Shown here piece by piece: positions 8,099 to 35,822 of a stretch of 64,000 bases of DNA; position 1 is the stretch's first letter, and each line of letters begins with the position of its first letter. The stretch is taken from sequence record NC_027399.1; one strand, written 5' to 3'. The notes under the pieces are model-generated. The model saw nothing but the letters and a program-made list of their open reading frames with translations. It had not been told where the DNA came from and did not search any database. The position numbers and the translations under genes are program-made.

Positions 8099-8365
8099 AT
8101 GAGACAATTTTATGAACACTGGAAAATGTTGTTTAATAGTACAGAGTCGTTGTACTGGAATAGATATTATTCCGTTTGTATCAATGAATTGTATAATCAT
8201 TTTTTATATGAAGCTACTTCATCATTAAAAGGACAAACAGTTCAACACAACGTACTCGGCGAATGTAGAATTACAAGAGTTTATTCTTTTTATGATGATG
8301 AATTATTTTGTACAATATATTCGAATTTATACAGAATGGATGTAAAATTGCGAGATTTAATTTAA
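8099..8365 (+). CDS. Hypothetical protein, small paralogue family
   Basis: LKGQTVQHNVLGECRITRVY. Confidence 0.65.
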   Translation: MRQFYEHWKMLFNSTESLYWNRYYSVCINELYNHFLYEATSSLKGQTVQHNVLGECRITRVYSFYDDELFCTIYSNLYRMDVKLRDLI

Positions 8366-21972: not shown

Positions 21973-22569
21973 ATGTTTATTGTACTAAAAGAATTTTTAT
22001 ATAATACATTAATTGCTTTTTCACTTATTTTCCCATCACATGATATTCAACAGAATGTAACTGTAAACGATAGTAACGTGTTAATTTTTAATACTAAAAT
22101 AAACGACGAATCAGTACAAAGAGCGGAAACATTATATAAGAAATATAAGTACAAAACCATTTCTATTACCTCACCTGGAGGTGATGTGAATTCTGGTTTT
22201 GAATTAGCAGTCTTTGCTTCTGACCATAATATTAAAGTTAATGTACCGAAGTACTGTGCAAGTGCATGTACAGTTATATTTTTTGCTGCTGATAAACAAA
22301 ACAGAGTTATGGATAAAGATGCTATTATTGCTATTCATAATGTTTCGGTTGTGGCTAATAATGATATTTCTGGTAATGAAACCATATCTATCAATACTGC
22401 CATGGATTTAATGAAAGATACATCAGAAATTGTAGCAGCTATGTATAGTTTATATGCATATGTTGGTATTCCAGGTGAAATCCTGATGAGAACAAGCACT
22501 ATGCACGGAGCTGATTCTTATCAAATAACAAAAAAACAACTCCAAATGTGGGGCATTTTAGAAAAATAA
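21973..22569 (+). CDS. ClpP/crotonase-fold protein with a hydrophobic N-terminus
   Basis: ITSPGGDV, CASACTVIF and AIIAIHN motifs. Confidence 0.7.
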   Translation: MFIVLKEFLYNTLIAFSLIFPSHDIQQNVTVNDSNVLIFNTKINDESVQRAETLYKKYKYKTISITSPGGDVNSGFELAVFASDHNIKVNVPKYCASACTVIFFAADKQNRVMDKDAIIAIHNVSVVANNDISGNETISINTAMDLMKDTSEIVAAMYSLYAYVGIPGEILMRTSTMHGADSYQITKKQLQMWGILEK

Positions 22570-22591
22570 ATCTGTACAAGAATATCATTTG

Positions 22592-22656
22592 TGATATAAT
22601 AATTAAACAGAGAGTGATGTAGCTCTCTTTTATATAGCTTAGGGAGTACTAAGACA
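22592..22656 (+). promoter_or_regulatory. Extended -10 promoter plus two-hairpin leader with the SD in a loop
   Basis: TGaTATAAT(22592-22600); AGAGAG/CTCTCT; CTTAG-GGAGTA-CTAAG. Confidence 0.7.
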
Positions 22657-23721
22657 ATGAAAGAAAAAGTTTATGTATATATTGGACGTTTCCAAATTCC
22701 ACATATTGGTCATGAAGAAGTCCTCAAACATGCGATCAAAATTGCAGATCGTGTTATCATTCAGGTCGGTTCAAGTGAACTGGCTCGTGATCCAAAAAAT
22801 CCATTCACGTTTGAAGAACGTAAGTCAGTACTAGAAGAAATTACAAAACGTGTAGCTCAAGATGAATGGAATAAAGGTCGAACTGTTAAAATCGATATTA
22901 TGCCATTACATGATTATGTATATGATAATAATGCATGGCTAAAAGAAGTACAGGATAATGTTAAAACATGTACTTCAAGTAATGATATTACTATTACCGG
23001 TTGTCGTAAAAATGGTGATACTAGTACTGAATATCTTAACTATTTTCCTCAATGGAAAAATGACTTCATTAACGAAGTACAAAGTAATGCAAAGGGTACT
23101 ATTAGTAGTACTGAACTACGCGAAGCTTTCTTTGTCTCTGGTAAAGTTCCAACTGAATTTGTTTCAAAAGAAACAACAGAATTTCTAGAAAATTTTGTCA
23201 GTACTAAACCGGATGTATTCGATAATCTTATTAAAGAATATGAATTCATTAATCGTTATATTGAACAAATGAAAGAAGCACTACCTTATGATATTCCATT
23301 TTTAACAGCAGATAACATCGTCGTCAGTTGTGGTCACGTTCTTCTTATTCGTAGAAGAACATATCCAGGAAAAGGATTATTAGCTATGCCGGGTGGATAT
23401 TTTCAATGTTGGGATGATAAAGACCAGATTGATACTGCAATTCGTGAATTAAAAGAAGAAACTAAAATCGATGTACCTGAAAAAGTGCTTCGTGGTAATA
23501 TTGTTAGTGCAACAGACTTTACTGACATGAATAGAAGTCTTCGCTGGCGAATTCTAACTAAAGCTGTTCATATTCAATTACCTGACGTCACTCTACCTAA
23601 AGTTAAAGGAAGTGATGATGCAGAAAAAGCTCAGTGGATTCCACTAAGCGATGTAGAAAAATATCGTGATCAGTTCTTTGAGGACCATTATTCTATTTTG
23701 GCTTCAGTACTGAAACTATAA
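22657..23721 (+). CDS. nadM: Bifunctional NMN adenylyltransferase / ADP-ribose pyrophosphatase (NadM-Nudix, NatV-like)
   Basis: GRFQIPHIGH (HxGH), NPFTFEER, ISSTELR, Nudix box GG.....D......AIRELKEET and FFEDH. Confidence 0.92.
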   Translation: MKEKVYVYIGRFQIPHIGHEEVLKHAIKIADRVIIQVGSSELARDPKNPFTFEERKSVLEEITKRVAQDEWNKGRTVKIDIMPLHDYVYDNNAWLKEVQDNVKTCTSSNDITITGCRKNGDTSTEYLNYFPQWKNDFINEVQSNAKGTISSTELREAFFVSGKVPTEFVSKETTEFLENFVSTKPDVFDNLIKEYEFINRYIEQMKEALPYDIPFLTADNIVVSCGHVLLIRRRTYPGKGLLAMPGGYFQCWDDKDQIDTAIRELKEETKIDVPEKVLRGNIVSATDFTDMNRSLRWRILTKAVHIQLPDVTLPKVKGSDDAEKAQWIPLSDVEKYRDQFFEDHYSILASVLKL

Positions 23722-23750
23722 AGAATTATTACACAGAGTAATAATAAATC

Positions 23751-23796
23751 AGAGAACGTAGTAGTTCTCTAACTTAAACTAAGGGAGTCTTAGAAA
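23751..23796 (+). promoter_or_regulatory. Two-hairpin leader with the SD in a loop
   Basis: AGAGAAC/GTTCTCT; CTAAG-GGAGT-CTTAG. Confidence 0.7.
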
Positions 23797-25269
23797 ATGA
23801 AAAACGTAAATCCAAATGTAAACTTTATTTTAAACTGCGACAGCTATAAGATTCAACACAGAAAAATGCTCAAAAAGCATGTTGATGGTTATTACAGTAC
23901 TATTGTACCTCGTAAAAGCTCTCCACATAGCAACCATGTAGTTGTGGCTGGTTTGCAATACACAATTAATACCTATATCAATATTCAGATTACCAAAGAA
24001 GATGTTGATGAAGCTGAAATTGAAATTCGTGAACAAGGTTCACGTTTTGATAGAACTATTTGGGATAAAATCGTCAATGAGTTTGGTGGTAAAGTTCCAG
24101 TAAAAATTAGTGCTATTAAAGAAGGTACAGTTGTTCCAGTTCAATCAGTAGTTTGTGTTGTTGAAGCTAAAGATGAGTTTGCATTTTTGGCTAGTTATAT
24201 TGAAACTTGTATTCAACGTGGTGTATGGTATAGCAGTACTGTAGCATCTGAATGTCGTGCAATGAAAAAAATTCTTGCTGATGTAATGCAACGTCATGCT
24301 GGTCATAAGAATGTAGATTATCATTTCCACAACTTTGGAGATCGTAGTGCAACTTGTTTTGAACATGCATATGTAGCTGGTATGGCACATGCAATTATGT
24401 TCAATGGTTCGGATAGTTTAACTTCAAATCGTTATATTAAAGCTCACTATAATACTACCAAAGCGTATCTGAGTTCAGTTGACGCTACTGAACATAGCGT
24501 TATGTGCAGTAATAGTGATGCTGAACATCGCAATGATTATGGTGCAGCAGTAATGGCGGTAGATCATTGGGAAGAACAAGTTACAATGTGGGAAGAAGAT
24601 GGATTAGGTGTACCAGTAACTTCATGTGTTATTGATACTTATAATGATTATCGCTTTGTCCGTGACTTTATCGGTACTAAATTAAAAGACCGTATTGTTG
24701 AAATTGGCAAACGAGGTGGTCGCTTTGTTCTTCGTCCTGATTCACGAATTCCTAAAGAAATTTGTATTGATGTAATCGAAATTCTAATGGAAAAGTTTGG
24801 TTATACTATTAACGAACATGGTTACAAAGTACTACCACCATATATTGGAGTAATTCAAGGTGATGGTGTTAATTTCGATAGTATTCATGAAATTCTAGAT
24901 ATTCTTGATGAAAAGAAATTATCCCTTGAAAACATTGTATTTGGTTGTGGTACCAAATTGGTTAACCCTGAACGTGGTCGTGATCTTTATAGTTGGTCAA
25001 TGAAAGGTACTGCACAACATGTCGAAGATGAACGTGAATGGCAAGACCTATTCAAAGATCCAGCAGGTGAACCAGGCAAACGTTCACATAAAGGGCGTGT
25101 AGTAACCTGGAAATGTAAAGTATCTGGTAAGATTTTTGTTGATCGTGATGATCTTGATAAAATTAATCATTTCATTGAAAATCTACTTGTACCAATGTAT
25201 GACTGCGGTAAAATTATGAATTTCAGTACTTTTGATGAAGTTCGTGAGCGTGCTAACGCAGGTATCTAA
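23797..25269 (+). CDS. nadV: Nicotinamide phosphoribosyltransferase
   Basis: DSYK..H, HNFGDR, ATEHSVM, DTY, LRPDS, IQGDGV and FGCG. Confidence 0.92.
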   Translation: MKNVNPNVNFILNCDSYKIQHRKMLKKHVDGYYSTIVPRKSSPHSNHVVVAGLQYTINTYINIQITKEDVDEAEIEIREQGSRFDRTIWDKIVNEFGGKVPVKISAIKEGTVVPVQSVVCVVEAKDEFAFLASYIETCIQRGVWYSSTVASECRAMKKILADVMQRHAGHKNVDYHFHNFGDRSATCFEHAYVAGMAHAIMFNGSDSLTSNRYIKAHYNTTKAYLSSVDATEHSVMCSNSDAEHRNDYGAAVMAVDHWEEQVTMWEEDGLGVPVTSCVIDTYNDYRFVRDFIGTKLKDRIVEIGKRGGRFVLRPDSRIPKEICIDVIEILMEKFGYTINEHGYKVLPPYIGVIQGDGVNFDSIHEILDILDEKKLSLENIVFGCGTKLVNPERGRDLYSWSMKGTAQHVEDEREWQDLFKDPAGEPGKRSHKGRVVTWKCKVSGKIFVDRDDLDKINHFIENLLVPMYDCGKIMNFSTFDEVRERANAGI

Positions 25270-25276
25270 TATATTT

Positions 25277-25307
25277 TGGAGAGTCATTATGGCTCTCCAT
25301 TCTTTTT
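25277..25307 (+). terminator. Rho-independent terminator
   Basis: TGGAGAG...CTCTCCA followed by a T-rich tail. Confidence 0.75.
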
Positions 25308-25332
25308 AATTAAAGTAATAAAGGTATATAAT

Positions 25333-25509
25333 GTGCTTATTGGTTTTAAAATAGTTATTATCTTCTTTATATGGTTTATTACATATCAAATAATTGAAGA
25401 AATCAGTACTAAATTCTCTTCAAATAATTTCTTAGTAGACGTTTGTTTATTATCCATTGCGGTACTGGGATTTTTGATCATACCGGTTATATTTTCATAT
25501 TTTATATGA
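25333..25509 (+). CDS. Small two-TM membrane protein (GTG start)
   Basis: SD AAGGT; hydrophobic segments. Confidence 0.5.
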   Translation: MLIGFKIVIIFFIWFITYQIIEEISTKFSSNNFLVDVCLLSIAVLGFLIIPVIFSYFI

Positions 25510-25515
25510 AAAATG

Positions 25516-25544
25516 TTGACATTTTTTTCTTCATAAGATATAGT
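25516..25544 (+). promoter_or_regulatory. Sigma70-type promoter
   Basis: TTGACA-17-TATAGT. Confidence 0.8.
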
Positions 25545-25577
25545 ATAGATATTAACAATTAATAACGGATATCAAAA

Positions 25578-25844
25578 ATGTTCCAACATCTTTTGGATTT
25601 TTTCTGTACTGTAAACATTGAAAAACAAGCTAAGTTCATTATTGTAGAACTGGTCTGGTTTTACTTAGGTGGCCTGGTAATTACACTGTGTGCATTTTTA
25701 CATAGTGATATTAATCTTGGTATTTCCTATGCAAAAAGTGAGAATAAACCATCATTACTACTCAAGTTTATTAGATGTTTATTGTACTTAGCGTATATCT
25801 TATATATTGTTGGATTTTTTGGTGTATATTATGTAATTCATTAG
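25578..25844 (+). CDS. Small two-TM membrane protein
   Basis: Two hydrophobic helices. Confidence 0.7.
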   Translation: MFQHLLDFFCTVNIEKQAKFIIVELVWFYLGGLVITLCAFLHSDINLGISYAKSENKPSLLLKFIRCLLYLAYILYIVGFFGVYYVIH

Positions 25845-25854
25845 GAATTAATCG

Positions 25855-26592
25855 ATGATTAGTACTAAATTCATTAAAAAAGCTGGTGATAAAAGATTAC
25901 TAATCATTTCTGGAAATGGATTGTCAATGGATAGTGGTTTTGACTTATATGACATTCCTGATAATTTTCAGATAAATGATGTATGTAATATTGCCAGTTT
26001 AGGTACAAAATATCACGTAGTTCATTCTTATTATAATACTCTTAGAGTTAAATTAAAAGATATTGAACCAAACGAAATGCATTACTATATTAAATCATTA
26101 CAAGATGAGTATGGTGATAACTTTTTACACATGACCAGTAATGTAGATGATTTATATACAAGAATTGGTGGCACTGAATTAAAATTACATGGTAATATTA
26201 AAGAGGTTATAGAAAACTACACCGCTGATGGTTCTGAAATAGAAATAAAAGAATTAGGTTATGAACCATATATTCCATGTAGTGGTATTTTTTCTAAACC
26301 AGGTGTTACATTAATTGGTGAGTTCCATAGTTATTTTTATGGATATAAAATCCCAATTTATGAAGAACGAAATGAAATACTAAAATCATTAAATGAAAAT
26401 GATACTGTAGTAGTAATTGGAAGTTCTGATTCAGTACTGAAATGGAGCCATTTAATAAATGAGAAATGTTACACAGTACTAATCAATATAAGAAAAAATG
26501 AAAACGATCATCGTTTCAATGAACGAATTTATAAATCTTGTTCCAAATCTGTATTAGATTTATCTGGAATAATTTCAAAAAGGATGGTATAG
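25855..26592 (+). CDS. Divergent Sir2/sirtuin-family protein
   Basis: ISGNGLSMDSG, TSNVDDL, KLHG, KPGVTLIGE and VIGSS. Confidence 0.78.
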   Translation: MISTKFIKKAGDKRLLIISGNGLSMDSGFDLYDIPDNFQINDVCNIASLGTKYHVVHSYYNTLRVKLKDIEPNEMHYYIKSLQDEYGDNFLHMTSNVDDLYTRIGGTELKLHGNIKEVIENYTADGSEIEIKELGYEPYIPCSGIFSKPGVTLIGEFHSYFYGYKIPIYEERNEILKSLNENDTVVVIGSSDSVLKWSHLINEKCYTVLINIRKNENDHRFNERIYKSCSKSVLDLSGIISKRMV

Positions 26593-27146
26593 TGGAAAAA
26601 ATTGATTTCGGTACAAGAAGTACCAGAGCCGATTTTGCTTTTTGTTGGATTTTTGCCCGAGATTGTACTCCATACTCTGGATATGATGATCAACTTGGAA
26701 TTGATAAAGTAAATTTAGTACTAGCACAATTACGTTTTGATGGTTGCATTGGGGCGTGTGGTGGTATGGTGGAAAGTGATGATAATTCATTAGAAGAAGC
26801 TGTACAGCGTGAAGTACTGGAAGAAATTGGTTATACTGTTGATTTAACACATTTAAAACCACTTCTAAGCTTGCGTTTACCATCAGGCAGCCATTGCCAT
26901 AGCTATAGTTATGAAGTTGATTACAATGAATTACAAAGCATTAGAGATGGTGCTTATAGAGGAATACATTTCAATCCAGAATGTGCTGGTGTGAATCTTT
27001 TACATATTTCAAGATACACAAAAGGTTATGGAAACGAATGTGGATATAATGTATTATTAGAACAACACTGGAGTGGTACATCAAAAGAAGAATTTATGTA
27101 CCTTGTAGAGACAGAAAATCTATTAATTAGTTATTTGAAGGAATGA
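26592..27146 (+). CDS. Nudix hydrolase resembling the NUDT16 family
   Basis: QLRFDGCIGACGGMVESDDNSLEEAVQREVLEEIG; the GTG start overlaps the sirtuin TAG, with SD AAGGA. Confidence 0.8.
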   Translation: MEKIDFGTRSTRADFAFCWIFARDCTPYSGYDDQLGIDKVNLVLAQLRFDGCIGACGGMVESDDNSLEEAVQREVLEEIGYTVDLTHLKPLLSLRLPSGSHCHSYSYEVDYNELQSIRDGAYRGIHFNPECAGVNLLHISRYTKGYGNECGYNVLLEQHWSGTSKEEFMYLVETENLLISYLKE

Positions 27147-27478
27147 TAATGGGATACCAGTTATTTTTAGATGATATTCGTTACCCATCAAAATATTATA
27201 GTACTGAAATGGTACTATGTAGATCTTATGATGAAGCTGTCAAATATGTAGAAGAACATGGAATTCCAGAATTTATCAGTTTTGACCATGACCTTGGAGA
27301 TACTTCTGATAATGAAAAAACTGGTTATTCATTTGCTAAATTTTTGATTGATTATATGATTGATAATGGCATCAGTAATGAATTCAAATATAATATTCAT
27401 AGCTCAAATCCAGTAGGTGCAGATAATATCGATTCTTATCTAAAAGCTGGTTTTAAATATCTAAGAGAAAATATGTAA
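27143..27478 (+). CDS. Cyclic-phosphate-processing receiver-like domain protein
   Basis: LFLDDIR.P, RSYDEA, ISFDHDLG, TGY..AK and IHSSNPVG. Confidence 0.7.
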   Translation: MIMGYQLFLDDIRYPSKYYSTEMVLCRSYDEAVKYVEEHGIPEFISFDHDLGDTSDNEKTGYSFAKFLIDYMIDNGISNEFKYNIHSSNPVGADNIDSYLKAGFKYLRENM

Positions 27479-27795
27479 TGAAGATTGGTAATCATATTTT
27501 TGCATGTTTTATTAGTATATGTATCTGTTCGGTTGTTGCTGGATTGTGGTATAATTCAATGAGGTACGAAAAACACAATATTAGATATAATTCAGTTAAA
27601 GTTGTTGGTATTGGTCAATGTTCTAATAAAAGTTCGAGTACCGAGTGTTCTTTTTGGTACGAAGATGGAAATTCTACCCAATTTGCAATTTCAGATAATC
27701 CAGTTTCAATTGGTCAAATTGTTTATCAAATGTGCTGGACAGAAAAGGCTCGTGGTGATAGATGTTATGTAAATTACCAAACGAGTAAGCAGTAA
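27478..27795 (+). CDS. Membrane-anchored Cys-containing hypothetical protein
   Basis: N-terminal TM; TAATG coupling. Confidence 0.7.
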   Translation: MKIGNHIFACFISICICSVVAGLWYNSMRYEKHNIRYNSVKVVGIGQCSNKSSSTECSFWYEDGNSTQFAISDNPVSIGQIVYQMCWTEKARGDRCYVNYQTSKQ

Positions 27796-27816
27796 AAAAG
27801 TTGTATTTTAGCAGTT

Positions 27817-27872
27817 CTAAATACATATGAGAACAACATAATATTCTCCCCAACTAAGATAAGGAATATCTT
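27817..27872 (+). promoter_or_regulatory. Late-type promoter (CTAAATA) plus two-hairpin leader of phoH
   Basis: CTAAATA 27817-23; GAGAA/TTCTC; TAAGAT-AAGGAAT-ATCTTA(TG). Confidence 0.6.
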
Positions 27873-29312
27873 ATGAAAAAATATACTATTGACACTAACG
27901 TAGTACTTTCTGATCCAAATGCAATCACTGCGTTTGATGGTACATCTGTTATTCTTCCATTTAAAGTACTAGAAGAACTAGATTCTATTAAAAGTCGCAA
28001 TGTTGACGTATCTCGTGATGCACGTTTTGCAATCCGAAATATTGATGCAATTCTAGCTGATGCAACTTATGAAGAGATTAGAAATACTGGTGTTGATATT
28101 TCAAAAGTACATACGAATATGAGTGCTTCCAGTAAATTATTTGTAATTACCGATGAAGAAGCAGAAGCTTTAATTCGTACACAAGATAAAGAAGAAAAAT
28201 TAGTCACTCTTCTAAAAAGTACAGTTCCTGATGATAAAATCATTTTAGTAGCACTAGCAACTGATTCAGTACTAGTTACAAAAGATATCAATATGCGTCT
28301 AAAAGCACTATCTTATGGTGTTGAGGTTCAAGATTATCGTCATGATGTAGTACTAGAAGATAGTGATCTTATTCATGTCGGTCAACATCATCTTGACATT
28401 GATTTTTGGGAAATGTTTAAAGATATTCCTGATGCAGAAATTAAATCCAATCAAATTGGTAGAAAATTGTATCACTATATCAGTACTGAACTATTAAAAG
28501 ATTCGTTACCAACAAATATGTATATTGGTGATTATTTGTATGATAATTCTGATGTATTGTTTGTATATGATGGTATTGTTGAGCTTGATGATTCAGAAGG
28601 TAATGCAATTGAAGGTGAGTTTTTTGTATTTCAAGATGTAGGACAATCGGTTGCTTTACGTGCTAAAGTTTGGGATATTAAATCAAAAAATATCCAACAA
28701 TCATTAGCAATTAATAGTATTCTCGATCCTGACGTACATCTTACTGTACTTCTTGGTTCTGCTGGTACTGGTAAAACACTAATTACAATTGCAAGTGCAC
28801 TTGAATTAGTACTAGAGAAGAAAAAATATTCTCGTATTATTTTCTCAAAAACTCAAGATTCACAGTTTGAAGATATTGGTTTCCTACCAGGATCAGAAAG
28901 TGAAAAAGTAATTCCTTTCTGTGGTGCAGCAATTGATGCATTAGAGTTTTTACATCGTGATGACCGCGATCCACAAGGTAGTATTGAAGAAATTATGAAA
29001 CGTAATGTTATTCAATTTAAAGCATTGAACTTCGTTCGTGGTCGTAGTTTCACTGATACAATTCTTGTTATCGACGAATTCCAAAATATTTCACCCGCAC
29101 AAGCGAAGACAATCTTGACACGTGCTGGACAAAACTGTAAAGTAATCATTATGGGAAACCTATCACAAATTGATAATAAATTTATTAGTGCAGTGAATAG
29201 TGGTTTAACATATGTTACTGAAAAATTTAAAGATTGGTCCGGTTGTCGTATCATCGAGTTAGAAGGTGTTGTGCGTTCACCATTAGCCGAATTTGCTGAG
29301 AAAAATATGTAA
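27873..29312 (+). CDS. phoH: PIN-PhoH (PhoH2/YlaK-like) ATPase
   Basis: PIN motifs IDTNV, VLEELD, DDKI and TKD.N.R; PhoH motifs GSAGTGKT, RGRSF, DEFQN, GN..QID and RSPLAE. Confidence 0.9.
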   Translation: MKKYTIDTNVVLSDPNAITAFDGTSVILPFKVLEELDSIKSRNVDVSRDARFAIRNIDAILADATYEEIRNTGVDISKVHTNMSASSKLFVITDEEAEALIRTQDKEEKLVTLLKSTVPDDKIILVALATDSVLVTKDINMRLKALSYGVEVQDYRHDVVLEDSDLIHVGQHHLDIDFWEMFKDIPDAEIKSNQIGRKLYHYISTELLKDSLPTNMYIGDYLYDNSDVLFVYDGIVELDDSEGNAIEGEFFVFQDVGQSVALRAKVWDIKSKNIQQSLAINSILDPDVHLTVLLGSAGTGKTLITIASALELVLEKKKYSRIIFSKTQDSQFEDIGFLPGSESEKVIPFCGAAIDALEFLHRDDRDPQGSIEEIMKRNVIQFKALNFVRGRSFTDTILVIDEFQNISPAQAKTILTRAGQNCKVIIMGNLSQIDNKFISAVNSGLTYVTEKFKDWSGCRIIELEGVVRSPLAEFAEKNM

Positions 29313-35724: not shown

Positions 35725-35766
35725 TTGATTTAAATCAAGAATAAAATCACCTTTTAGTGATATAAT
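35725..35766 (+). promoter_or_regulatory. FNR box plus -10 (class II FNR-type promoter) of the nrdD operon
   Basis: TTGAT-TTAA-ATCAA 35725-38, centred at 35731.5; TGaTATAAT with -10 at 35761-66. Confidence 0.8.
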
Positions 35767-35822
35767 ATGTTACGTAGCATTTAAATAAATCTACCACATA
35801 ATAAAAAAATCAAGGAAGAAAA

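Follow-up and report, generated by a model that had tools for sequence, protein, structure and literature searches.

Are the genes with which phages rebuild nicotinamide adenine dinucleotide (NAD+) controlled together at the level of their mRNAs? The question is raised by the final 64 kb of the 346.6-kb genome of K64-1 (NC_027399.1), a jumbo phage of Klebsiella that belongs to the RaK2-like group and to the genus Alcyoneusvirus. This stretch of 64,000 nucleotides (nt), hereafter the window, is 100% identical to record positions 282603-346602 and is numbered from its first letter. It contains nadM-Nudix and nadV, each behind a leader of two hairpins, the second of which carries the Shine-Dalgarno sequence in its loop. 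Their products correspond to the Nmnat and Nampt that make up NARP2, with which phages rebuild NAD+ and defeat the NAD+ depletion caused by defences such as Thoeris and DSR2 (10.1101/2024.02.11.579819). A preliminary description of the window had assigned the same leader to a third gene, phoH, and had proposed a common translational operator. We show, by comparison among phages, that the leader is conserved, specific to nadM and nadV, and selected as an RNA structure of the sense strand. The features concerned are the following.

22573..22600, + strand: predicted nadM promoter (TGTACA, 16-nt spacer, extended -10 TGATATAAT)
22609..22628, + strand: nadM hairpin 1 (AGAGAG 22609-22614; loop 22615-22622, (U)GAUGUA(G); CTCTCT 22623-22628; stem of 6-7 base pairs)
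22629..22637, + strand: nadM linker, AU-rich, 9 nt
22638..22653, + strand: nadM hairpin 2 (CTTAG 22638-22642, GGAGTA, CTAAG 22649-22653)
22657..23721, + strand: nadM-Nudix (natV; NMN adenylyltransferase / Nudix, where NMN is nicotinamide mononucleotide), Pfam CTP_transf_like and NUDIX, the Nmnat gene of NARP2
23751..23770, + strand: nadV hairpin 1 (AGAGAAC 23751-23757, loop GUAGUA, GTTCTCT 23764-23770)
23779..23793, + strand: nadV hairpin 2 (CUAAG-GGAGU-CUUAG), 3 nt before the ATG at 23797
23797..25269, + strand: nadV (nicotinamide phosphoribosyltransferase), Pfam NAMPT_N and NAPRTase, the Nampt gene of NARP2

Both motifs lie exactly where they had first been placed, and Pfam bears out the earlier gene calls for nadM-Nudix, nadV and phoH. 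The ribosome-binding GGAG of nadM (22643-22646) sits in the loop of hairpin 2, which ends 3 nt 5' of the ATG at 22657. The linker between the hairpins spans 8 nt in nadV (23771-23778) and 8-15 nt among relatives, where leader alignments show both its length and its sequence to be variable. The nadV linkers of K64-1, GAP32, XbC2 and XaC1 contain AACUUAA, which we take to resemble the 'epsilon' translational enhancer of T7 gene 10. The second stem had been called inverted between the two genes; the difference comes down to one base pair that is flipped (U-A to A-U) and a loop longer by one base. RNAfold returned the two hairpins as the minimum-energy fold of the nadM, nadV and phoH leaders, with folding z-scores against dinucleotide shuffles that are modest (-2.2, -2.0 and -1.6, respectively), and GGAG is unpaired in every fold computed for nadM and nadV. 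Since single-sequence folding beats shuffles only modestly, the case must rest on comparison.

The RaK2-like relatives retrieved with blastn range from near-identical to ~65% identity and comprise Mimasvirus, Eneladusvirus, Asteriusvirus, and unclassified phages; leaders were read in 15 of them. The stems of hairpin 1 vary while the architecture is kept (AGAGAG/CUCUCU, CAAGG/CCUUG, CAAAG/CUUUG, GAAAG/CUUUC, GCCGA/UCGGU, and CCAAC/GUUGG), and the loop stays YG(N)NGUAG or, in Asterius-like phages, GCGAA, GCGGA or GUGGA. The 15-mer of hairpin 2, CUAAG-GGAGU-CUUAG, is invariant in the nadM and/or nadV leaders of most of these relatives. We scanned a covariance model built from 14 leaders (R1), a check that the preliminary description had called for, against the complete genomes of K64-1, GAP32, Yen9-04, Munch, and EJP2. 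In the first three genomes the sole strong matches were the nadM and nadV leaders (E 1e-9 to 1e-16), everything else being terminators or noise; matches were weak in the more diverged Munch (nadV E = 0.008, nadM E = 0.9), and R1 detected neither of the two leaders, also more diverged, in EJP2. In the alignment of 26 distinct sequences to the model, pairing holds in 94.5% of cells, with compensatory changes on both sides at all 7 pairs of hairpin 1 and at 8 pairs over the whole element. None of 500 shuffles reached these covariation values, sliding the 3' partner abolishes the signal, and the G-U pairs are compatible with the sense strand only. Within the RaK2-like group hairpin 2 is fully paired and near-invariant, its one compensatory flip being that of K64-1 nadM. 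The pairing proposed for these two genes is kept in the orthologous leaders of relatives, where the stems covary, and judged by this comparison their two-hairpin leader is real, far beyond chance.

Hairpin 2 extends well outside the RaK2-like phages. The exact 15-mer occurs in 29 stretches of IMG/VR, about half of them from RaK2-like phages and one from a 172.6-kb contig, while the remaining matches are isolated, chance-like and without the rest of the motif. The contig is a complete phage (G002) whose NadM is only ~38% identical to that of K64-1. Its nadM gene follows a sigma-70-type promoter, a hairpin with the loop core GGAUAGACC, and the identical 15-mer; upstream of its nadV gene that loop core recurs on another stem, in a hairpin that overlaps the nadM stop codon, and GAUAAG-GAG-CUUAUC and the ATG come next. 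The loop core GGATAGACC is found exactly twice in this genome, at the nadM and nadV leaders. Some 20 further phage lineages came from protein-guided retrieval, and KVP40, the phage in which NARP2 was characterised (10.1101/2024.02.11.579819), was added separately. In those lineages a GGAGN pentaloop on 4-7 pairs, ending 0-4 nt before the ATG, precedes nadM and nadV. The stems have 17 different sequences across lineages, and such diversity implies many independent compensations; in KVP40, where the two genes lie 43 kb apart, they read UGGG-GAG-CCCA before natV and AUGG-GAG-CCAU before nadV. With the register fixed on GGAGN and gene starts called by a simple in-house rule combining open reading frame (ORF) and Shine-Dalgarno sequence, at least 4 nested pairs were present in 29/40 NAD leaders, related ones included, vs 10/366 GGAG-bearing genes of three genomes (p = 6e-27), and 3 of these 10 are NAD genes themselves. 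Within the same contigs, hairpin 2 precedes 23/30 NAD genes vs 1/30 neighbouring genes (p = 3e-9). Among 15 full-length NadM-Nudix genes of bacteria, the leader is missing from all but one, which lies on a 2.8-kb contig, phage-like in appearance, of a metagenome-assembled genome.

A look-alike stands before an ORF of 74 amino acids elsewhere in K64-1 (record 237652-237876, outside the window): a TGTATAAT promoter is followed by an 8-bp hairpin with the loop AUUA and by CAAA-GGAGU-UUUG before the ATG, one of only 10 GGAGN-pentaloop sites among the ~1740 genes of three genomes.

What distinguishes one lineage from another is the loop of hairpin 1. These loops are purine-rich penta- or hexaloops of the approximate form R-N-R-N-A, with hexaloops in the RaK2-like phages, and fall by lineage into G(N)NGUA, GCGRA/GUGGA, AUAGA, AGAGA, AGGGA/ACGGA, and GGGGU. 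Within one genome both leaders have matching loops on dissimilar stems, and the loops change from lineage to lineage; a permutation of the loop matches over eight lineage representatives gave p = 1.5e-4. Of the hairpins in K64-1 that combine a YG(N)NGTAG loop with at least 5 pairs, three in all, two belong to the nadM and nadV leaders. Loops that are matched within a genome and specific to a lineage are what one would expect of a factor evolving with the phage, and not of an aptamer for a universal metabolite. This pattern, read from the alignments, points to a co-evolving trans-acting factor.

Does hairpin 1 instead belong to the promoter? The predicted nadM promoter ranks second among the promoter-like sites in 22300-28000. 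In 10/11 RaK2-like phages examined, XaC1 being the exception, an extended -10 (TGNTATAAT) lies 8-9 nt 5' of nadM hairpin 1 and is itself preceded by an element of the TGAAACG/TGAACA type. From the kept spacing of this -10, hairpin 1 starts at about +2 of the predicted transcript. The class TGAACA/TGAAACG + TATAAT occurs at many K64-1 sites and has been reported for CBB and GAP32 (PMC5259590). Transcripts from TGNTATAAT promoters in K64-1 are not enriched for hairpins (38/104 sites vs 35.1 in shuffles), which rules out hairpin 1 as a general trait of these promoters. Nor does hairpin 1 need to stand at the 5' end of an mRNA, because in lineage B the nadV copy overlaps the nadM stop codon and is hence internal. 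The nadM hairpin was flagged as terminator-like in K64-1 owing to its U-rich tail, and such a tail, expected of an intrinsic terminator or attenuator, is missing in GAP32, Yen9-04, CBB, XbC2, and others. Two more TGATATAAT promoters are directly followed by hairpins, at 2715-2747 of the window (ATGTAAAA-GGA-TTTTACAT) and at ~35755-35782 (ATGTT-ACGT-AGCAT).

The third gene in the proposed set has the following features.

27817..27875, + strand: phoH leader, not a member of the element (late-promoter-like CTAAATAC 27817-27824; weak hairpin 27829-27848; AT-rich hairpin 27855-27873)
27873-29312: phoH (PIN + PhoH protein, Pfam)

Its motifs are again present as described: GAGAA (27829-27833) and TTCTC (27844-27848), then TAAGAT-AAGGAAT-ATCTTA (27855-27873), which overlaps the ATG at 27873, and an alternative pairing of GTTCT (27814-27818) with AGAAC (27830-27834), which is lost in KP13-7. 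The claim that phoH shares the leader and its operator fails on several grounds. R1 gives no match to this leader even at E<=10. The ribosome-binding site is AAGGAA, with no GGAG, and the hairpin around it is AT-rich, of a kind common in these genomes: K64-1, GAP32, and EJP2 have inverted repeats of at least 5 pairs around the ribosome-binding site at 13.5-17.8% of their genes. The upstream motif is of the late type, and the ATAAATA late motif has been reported for this phage group (PMC5259590); the KVP40 phoH leader also has a late-type TATAAAT. Both hairpins are missing in the phoH leaders of GAP32, Yen9-04, CBB, XbC2, EJP2, KVP40, and two IMG/VR phages, so that among the leaders compared this one is kept only within Alcyoneusvirus. 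The absence of a model match, the late-type promoter, the common kind of hairpin, and the lack of conservation together place phoH outside the element and largely refute the idea of one post-transcriptional regulon linking NAD salvage and PhoH. By these comparisons phoH is a late gene in its own right, and its leader is an ordinary one that resembles the other two by chance. In K64-1, GAP32, and EJP2, AT-rich inverted repeats that place the Shine-Dalgarno sequence in a hairpin loop stand before 12-18% of genes and are several-fold more frequent than in a crude shuffle control, which suggests that such hairpins are a genome-wide habit of these jumbo phages.

What does the leader do? We tentatively prefer to see in it an undescribed translational operator common to the two genes of NARP2. 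It would consist of 1) a hairpin of 5-7 bp capped by a purine-rich penta- or hexaloop; 2) an A-rich linker of 8-15 nt; and 3) a second, short hairpin, 0-4 nt from the AUG, whose pentaloop presents the GGAG of the Shine-Dalgarno sequence. A trans-acting protein co-evolving with the phage lineage would specifically recognise the loop of hairpin 1. The bound protein, together with hairpin 2, would compete against the 30S subunit and occlude the ribosome entry site; without it, hairpin 2 would keep GGAG accessible and its distance to the AUG constant. The outcome would be that two enzymes of a costly pathway are produced in step and kept in check. The presence of the same leader on both genes implies that they are probably switched together after transcription. 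NARP2 uses up phosphoribosyl pyrophosphate (PRPP) and over-produces NAD+, and the KVP40 operon is toxic in E. coli (10.1101/2024.02.11.579819); this cost and toxicity give a reason for such control.

The most economical candidates for the factor would be NadM-Nudix or NadV, or another phage protein. Homologues of RegA and CsrA were searched for and are not encoded, and RegB (PF10715) is above the cut-off in none of K64-1, GAP32, Yen9-04, KVP40, EJP2, Munch, and G002, which yielded two sub-threshold matches of ~12 bits. The proposed common translational operator stands to the extent that nadM and nadV share a conserved leader with selected pairing, and it loses phoH and the analogy with RegB, absent at this threshold from all seven motif-bearing genomes. 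Our best guess, from the pattern of conservation, is that another phage RNA-binding regulator acts on these leaders. A few candidates were discarded. The 'hyp' gene that separates nadM from nadV in GAP32-like phages has no K64-1 homologue. Every complete motif-bearing genome tested has phoH, but PhoH could count as a lead only, being common in large phages and having no PIN domain outside the RaK2-like group. The neighbouring Nudix proteins, as regulators of the NrtR type, have Nudt16-like and cREC_REC domains and no DNA-binding domain.

Several points weigh against a dedicated operator. The searches turned up no trans-acting factor. Hairpin 1 is missing in the KVP40 natV leader, and the canonical hairpin 2 is missing in nadV of Munch, EJP2, and Hallingskeid. 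The loop table has three entries read by eye (L144 and L146 nadM, L147 nadV), and the sharing of loops within genomes could partly stem from duplication or gene conversion. The hairpin-2 statistics count related sequences, so that their p-values overstate independence.

The main competing explanation, unlikely yet the one to be taken most seriously, is a passive expression module with no dedicated regulator, in which hairpin 1, near the 5' end or between cistrons, would stabilise the mRNA by shielding it from RNase E and exonucleases and hairpin 2 would keep the Shine-Dalgarno sequence single-stranded and optimally spaced, ensuring robust translation of both enzymes. The position of hairpin 1, 8-9 nt past the extended -10 and near +2 of the predicted nadM transcript, would fit this, since 5' stem-loops at such a position, for which a distance of up to about 4 nt from the 5' end is expected, stabilise E. 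coli mRNAs, as in the ompA leader, and GGAG is unpaired in all folds. A passive module leaves unexplained why the loop is conserved while the stems drift, why the two leaders within one genome carry the same loop, found nowhere else, and why most other transcripts from promoters of the same class have no such hairpins. A feedback sensor tying NARP2 to the NAD+ state of the cell seems to us quite unlikely: NadM-Nudix or NadV would moonlight by binding both mRNAs and repressing them in response to a ligand, or the leader would itself be a minimal metabolite switch, and expression would rise once host immunity depletes NAD+. The purely RNA-based version, a minimal riboswitch for NAD+, NMN, nicotinamide, ADP-ribose or PRPP that gates the ribosome-binding site, is very unlikely. 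The element is strictly tied to NAD genes and travels with them in many lineages, and two-hairpin riboswitches with conserved loops do exist (guanidine-II). Yet Rfam 15, which includes the NAD+-I and NAD+-II riboswitches, gave 0 matches in the whole window at the gathering threshold, and a permissive scan (E<=10) of the K64-1 nadM and GAP32 nadV leaders returned unrelated families only, at E ~1-7 and far under thresholds. GGAG alone is universal, and the hairpin-1 loop, the sole other conserved sequence, differs by lineage, unlike an aptamer core; inspection by eye of loop 1, linker and hairpin 2 revealed no kissing or alternative pairing conserved across lineages.

The other explanations invoke known regulators, and we rank them lower again. 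Binding of a host global regulator of the CsrA type to GGA in both hairpin loops, the second overlapping the Shine-Dalgarno sequence, would suit hairpin 2, which always presents GGA in its loop, as well as the hairpin-1 loops ACGGA, AGGGA, GCGGA, and GUGGA, and the loop-to-loop spacing of ~20-27 nt is within the range reported for CsrA dimers. Against this, the hairpin-1 loops of the best-sampled lineages have no GGA (GUUGUA, AUAGA, and AGAGA), GGA is part of any Shine-Dalgarno sequence, and no phage-encoded CsrA was found. Still less probable is a site resembling boxB, in which hairpin 1, with its 5-bp stem and R-N-R-N-A pentaloop that we take to be boxB-like, would recruit an arginine-rich antiterminator for read-through of terminators. 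The loops of EJP2, Hallingskeid, and L158 (GCGAA, GCGGA, and GUGGA), and many others, fit a GNRA-like pentaloop on five pairs near a promoter, and GAP32-like phages have a terminator-like hairpin directly after nadM. In K64-1, nadM and nadV have no terminator between them, inspection by eye revealed no boxA-like element 5' of the hairpin, and no N-like protein turned up, no search having been aimed at arginine-rich antiterminators. The endoribonuclease or regulator first suggested, which would act like RegB on a single regulon of nadM, nadV, and phoH through GGAG sites in loops, is highly improbable: an accessible Shine-Dalgarno GGAG is displayed by nadM and nadV, as RegB targets require, while phoH has AAGGAA, a late promoter and no conservation, and the seven genomes have no RegB above the Pfam cut-off. 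Least probable of all, the inverted repeats would act at the DNA level as operators, bound by a dimeric transcription factor (an NrtR-like protein, for example). NrtR control is common among bacterial NAD genes, and the palindrome CTAAG-N5-CTTAG adjoins NAD genes; but the spacer between the arms varies (3-6 nt), the arms change freely while remaining complementary (17 stem variants), the G-U pairs work in RNA alone, and the adjacent Nudt16-like and cREC_REC proteins contain no DNA-binding domain.

The putative operator has precedents that it matches only in part. The operator of T4 gene 43 (DNA polymerase) is a hairpin with a 5-bp stem and a loop of ~8 nt, 5' of the Shine-Dalgarno sequence, and is dependent on the loop sequence and autogenous, as T4 translational repression is in other cases too. 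The NARP2 leader, in the mRNA of a T4-related phage, likewise has a hairpin just 5' of the Shine-Dalgarno sequence and would be recognised through its loop, but it is present on two genes and has a second hairpin that displays the Shine-Dalgarno sequence. The E. coli thrS operator has two recognised hairpin loops by the ribosome-binding site, where a dimeric metabolic enzyme competes with the 30S subunit; the phage leader resembles it in having two hairpins beside this site and, as we propose, in binding an enzyme, and differs in showing no evident tRNA mimicry. NAD+ riboswitches of classes I (nadA motif) and II (pnuC motif) are also cis-acting leaders of NAD-related genes, and class II likewise involves the Shine-Dalgarno sequence, but they differ in that the phage element matches none of their covariance models, has no conserved internal-loop core and has lineage-specific loops. 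T4 RegB sites similarly expose GGAG of the Shine-Dalgarno sequence in a loop, in many early genes instead of the two concerned here, and these phages have no detectable RegB. The boxB of lambda nut shares the 5-bp stem and purine-rich pentaloop near a promoter, whereas the phage hairpin lies between cistrons in some lineages and has hexaloops in RaK2-like phages. Stabilisers of the ompA type share the stem-loop a few nt from the predicted 5' end, as in the nadM mRNA, while the loop sequence of the phage leader is conserved and gene-specific and the nadV copy of lineage B is internal.

The neighbourhood of the two genes is itself variable. Downstream of nadV in K64-1 lies an NAD-centred gene cluster (25855-27478) that encodes Sir2 at 25855-26592, a Nudix protein of the Nudt16-like kind at 26538-27146 and, at 27143-27478, a cREC_REC protein ('cyclic-phosphate processing receiver'). 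In GAP32 a single ORF of 301 amino acids (L004 13105-14010) holds both the Nudix and the cREC_REC part, which implies a fusion or fission event. An ORF of homing-endonuclease type is inserted between nadM and nadV in RaK2 (L002 8341-9366) and KP13-7 (L003 8376-9800) and is absent from K64-1; the nadV leader is intact directly 3' of the insertion in both phages, and a homing endonuclease is annotated at this locus in Muenster. A further ORF is inserted directly 5' of phoH in KP13-7 (L003 13892-14830), also absent from K64-1. GAP32-like phages (L004 ~8120-8150, L005, L006, and L007) have a terminator-like hairpin, GGAGUAC-tetraloop-GUACUCC followed by a U-run, directly after the nadM stop codon, as well as an extra ORF of 171 amino acids with no Pfam match between nadM and nadV, and K64-1 has neither. 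Further along the window, at 38991-63869, each large ORF of tail-fibre or depolymerase type has a GC-rich terminator hairpin on its 5' side and a late-promoter-like motif TAAATA(C/T) ~30-40 nt before its ATG.

The paper on NARP2 remarks on the cost of the pathway and on its toxicity in E. coli, and the terms riboswitch and UTR (untranslated region) do not occur in it (10.1101/2024.02.11.579819); in the literature available for searching, no paper turned up that relates nadV or NARP2 to a leader, a UTR or a riboswitch. The conservation of the leader, and its specificity to two genes across distant lineages, suggest that the expression of this counter-defence is controlled post-transcriptionally. 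A defined element of 50 nt is now available for testing the control of NARP2. It would serve as a compact marker of NARP2 cassettes, and it is a candidate new entry for RNA family databases.

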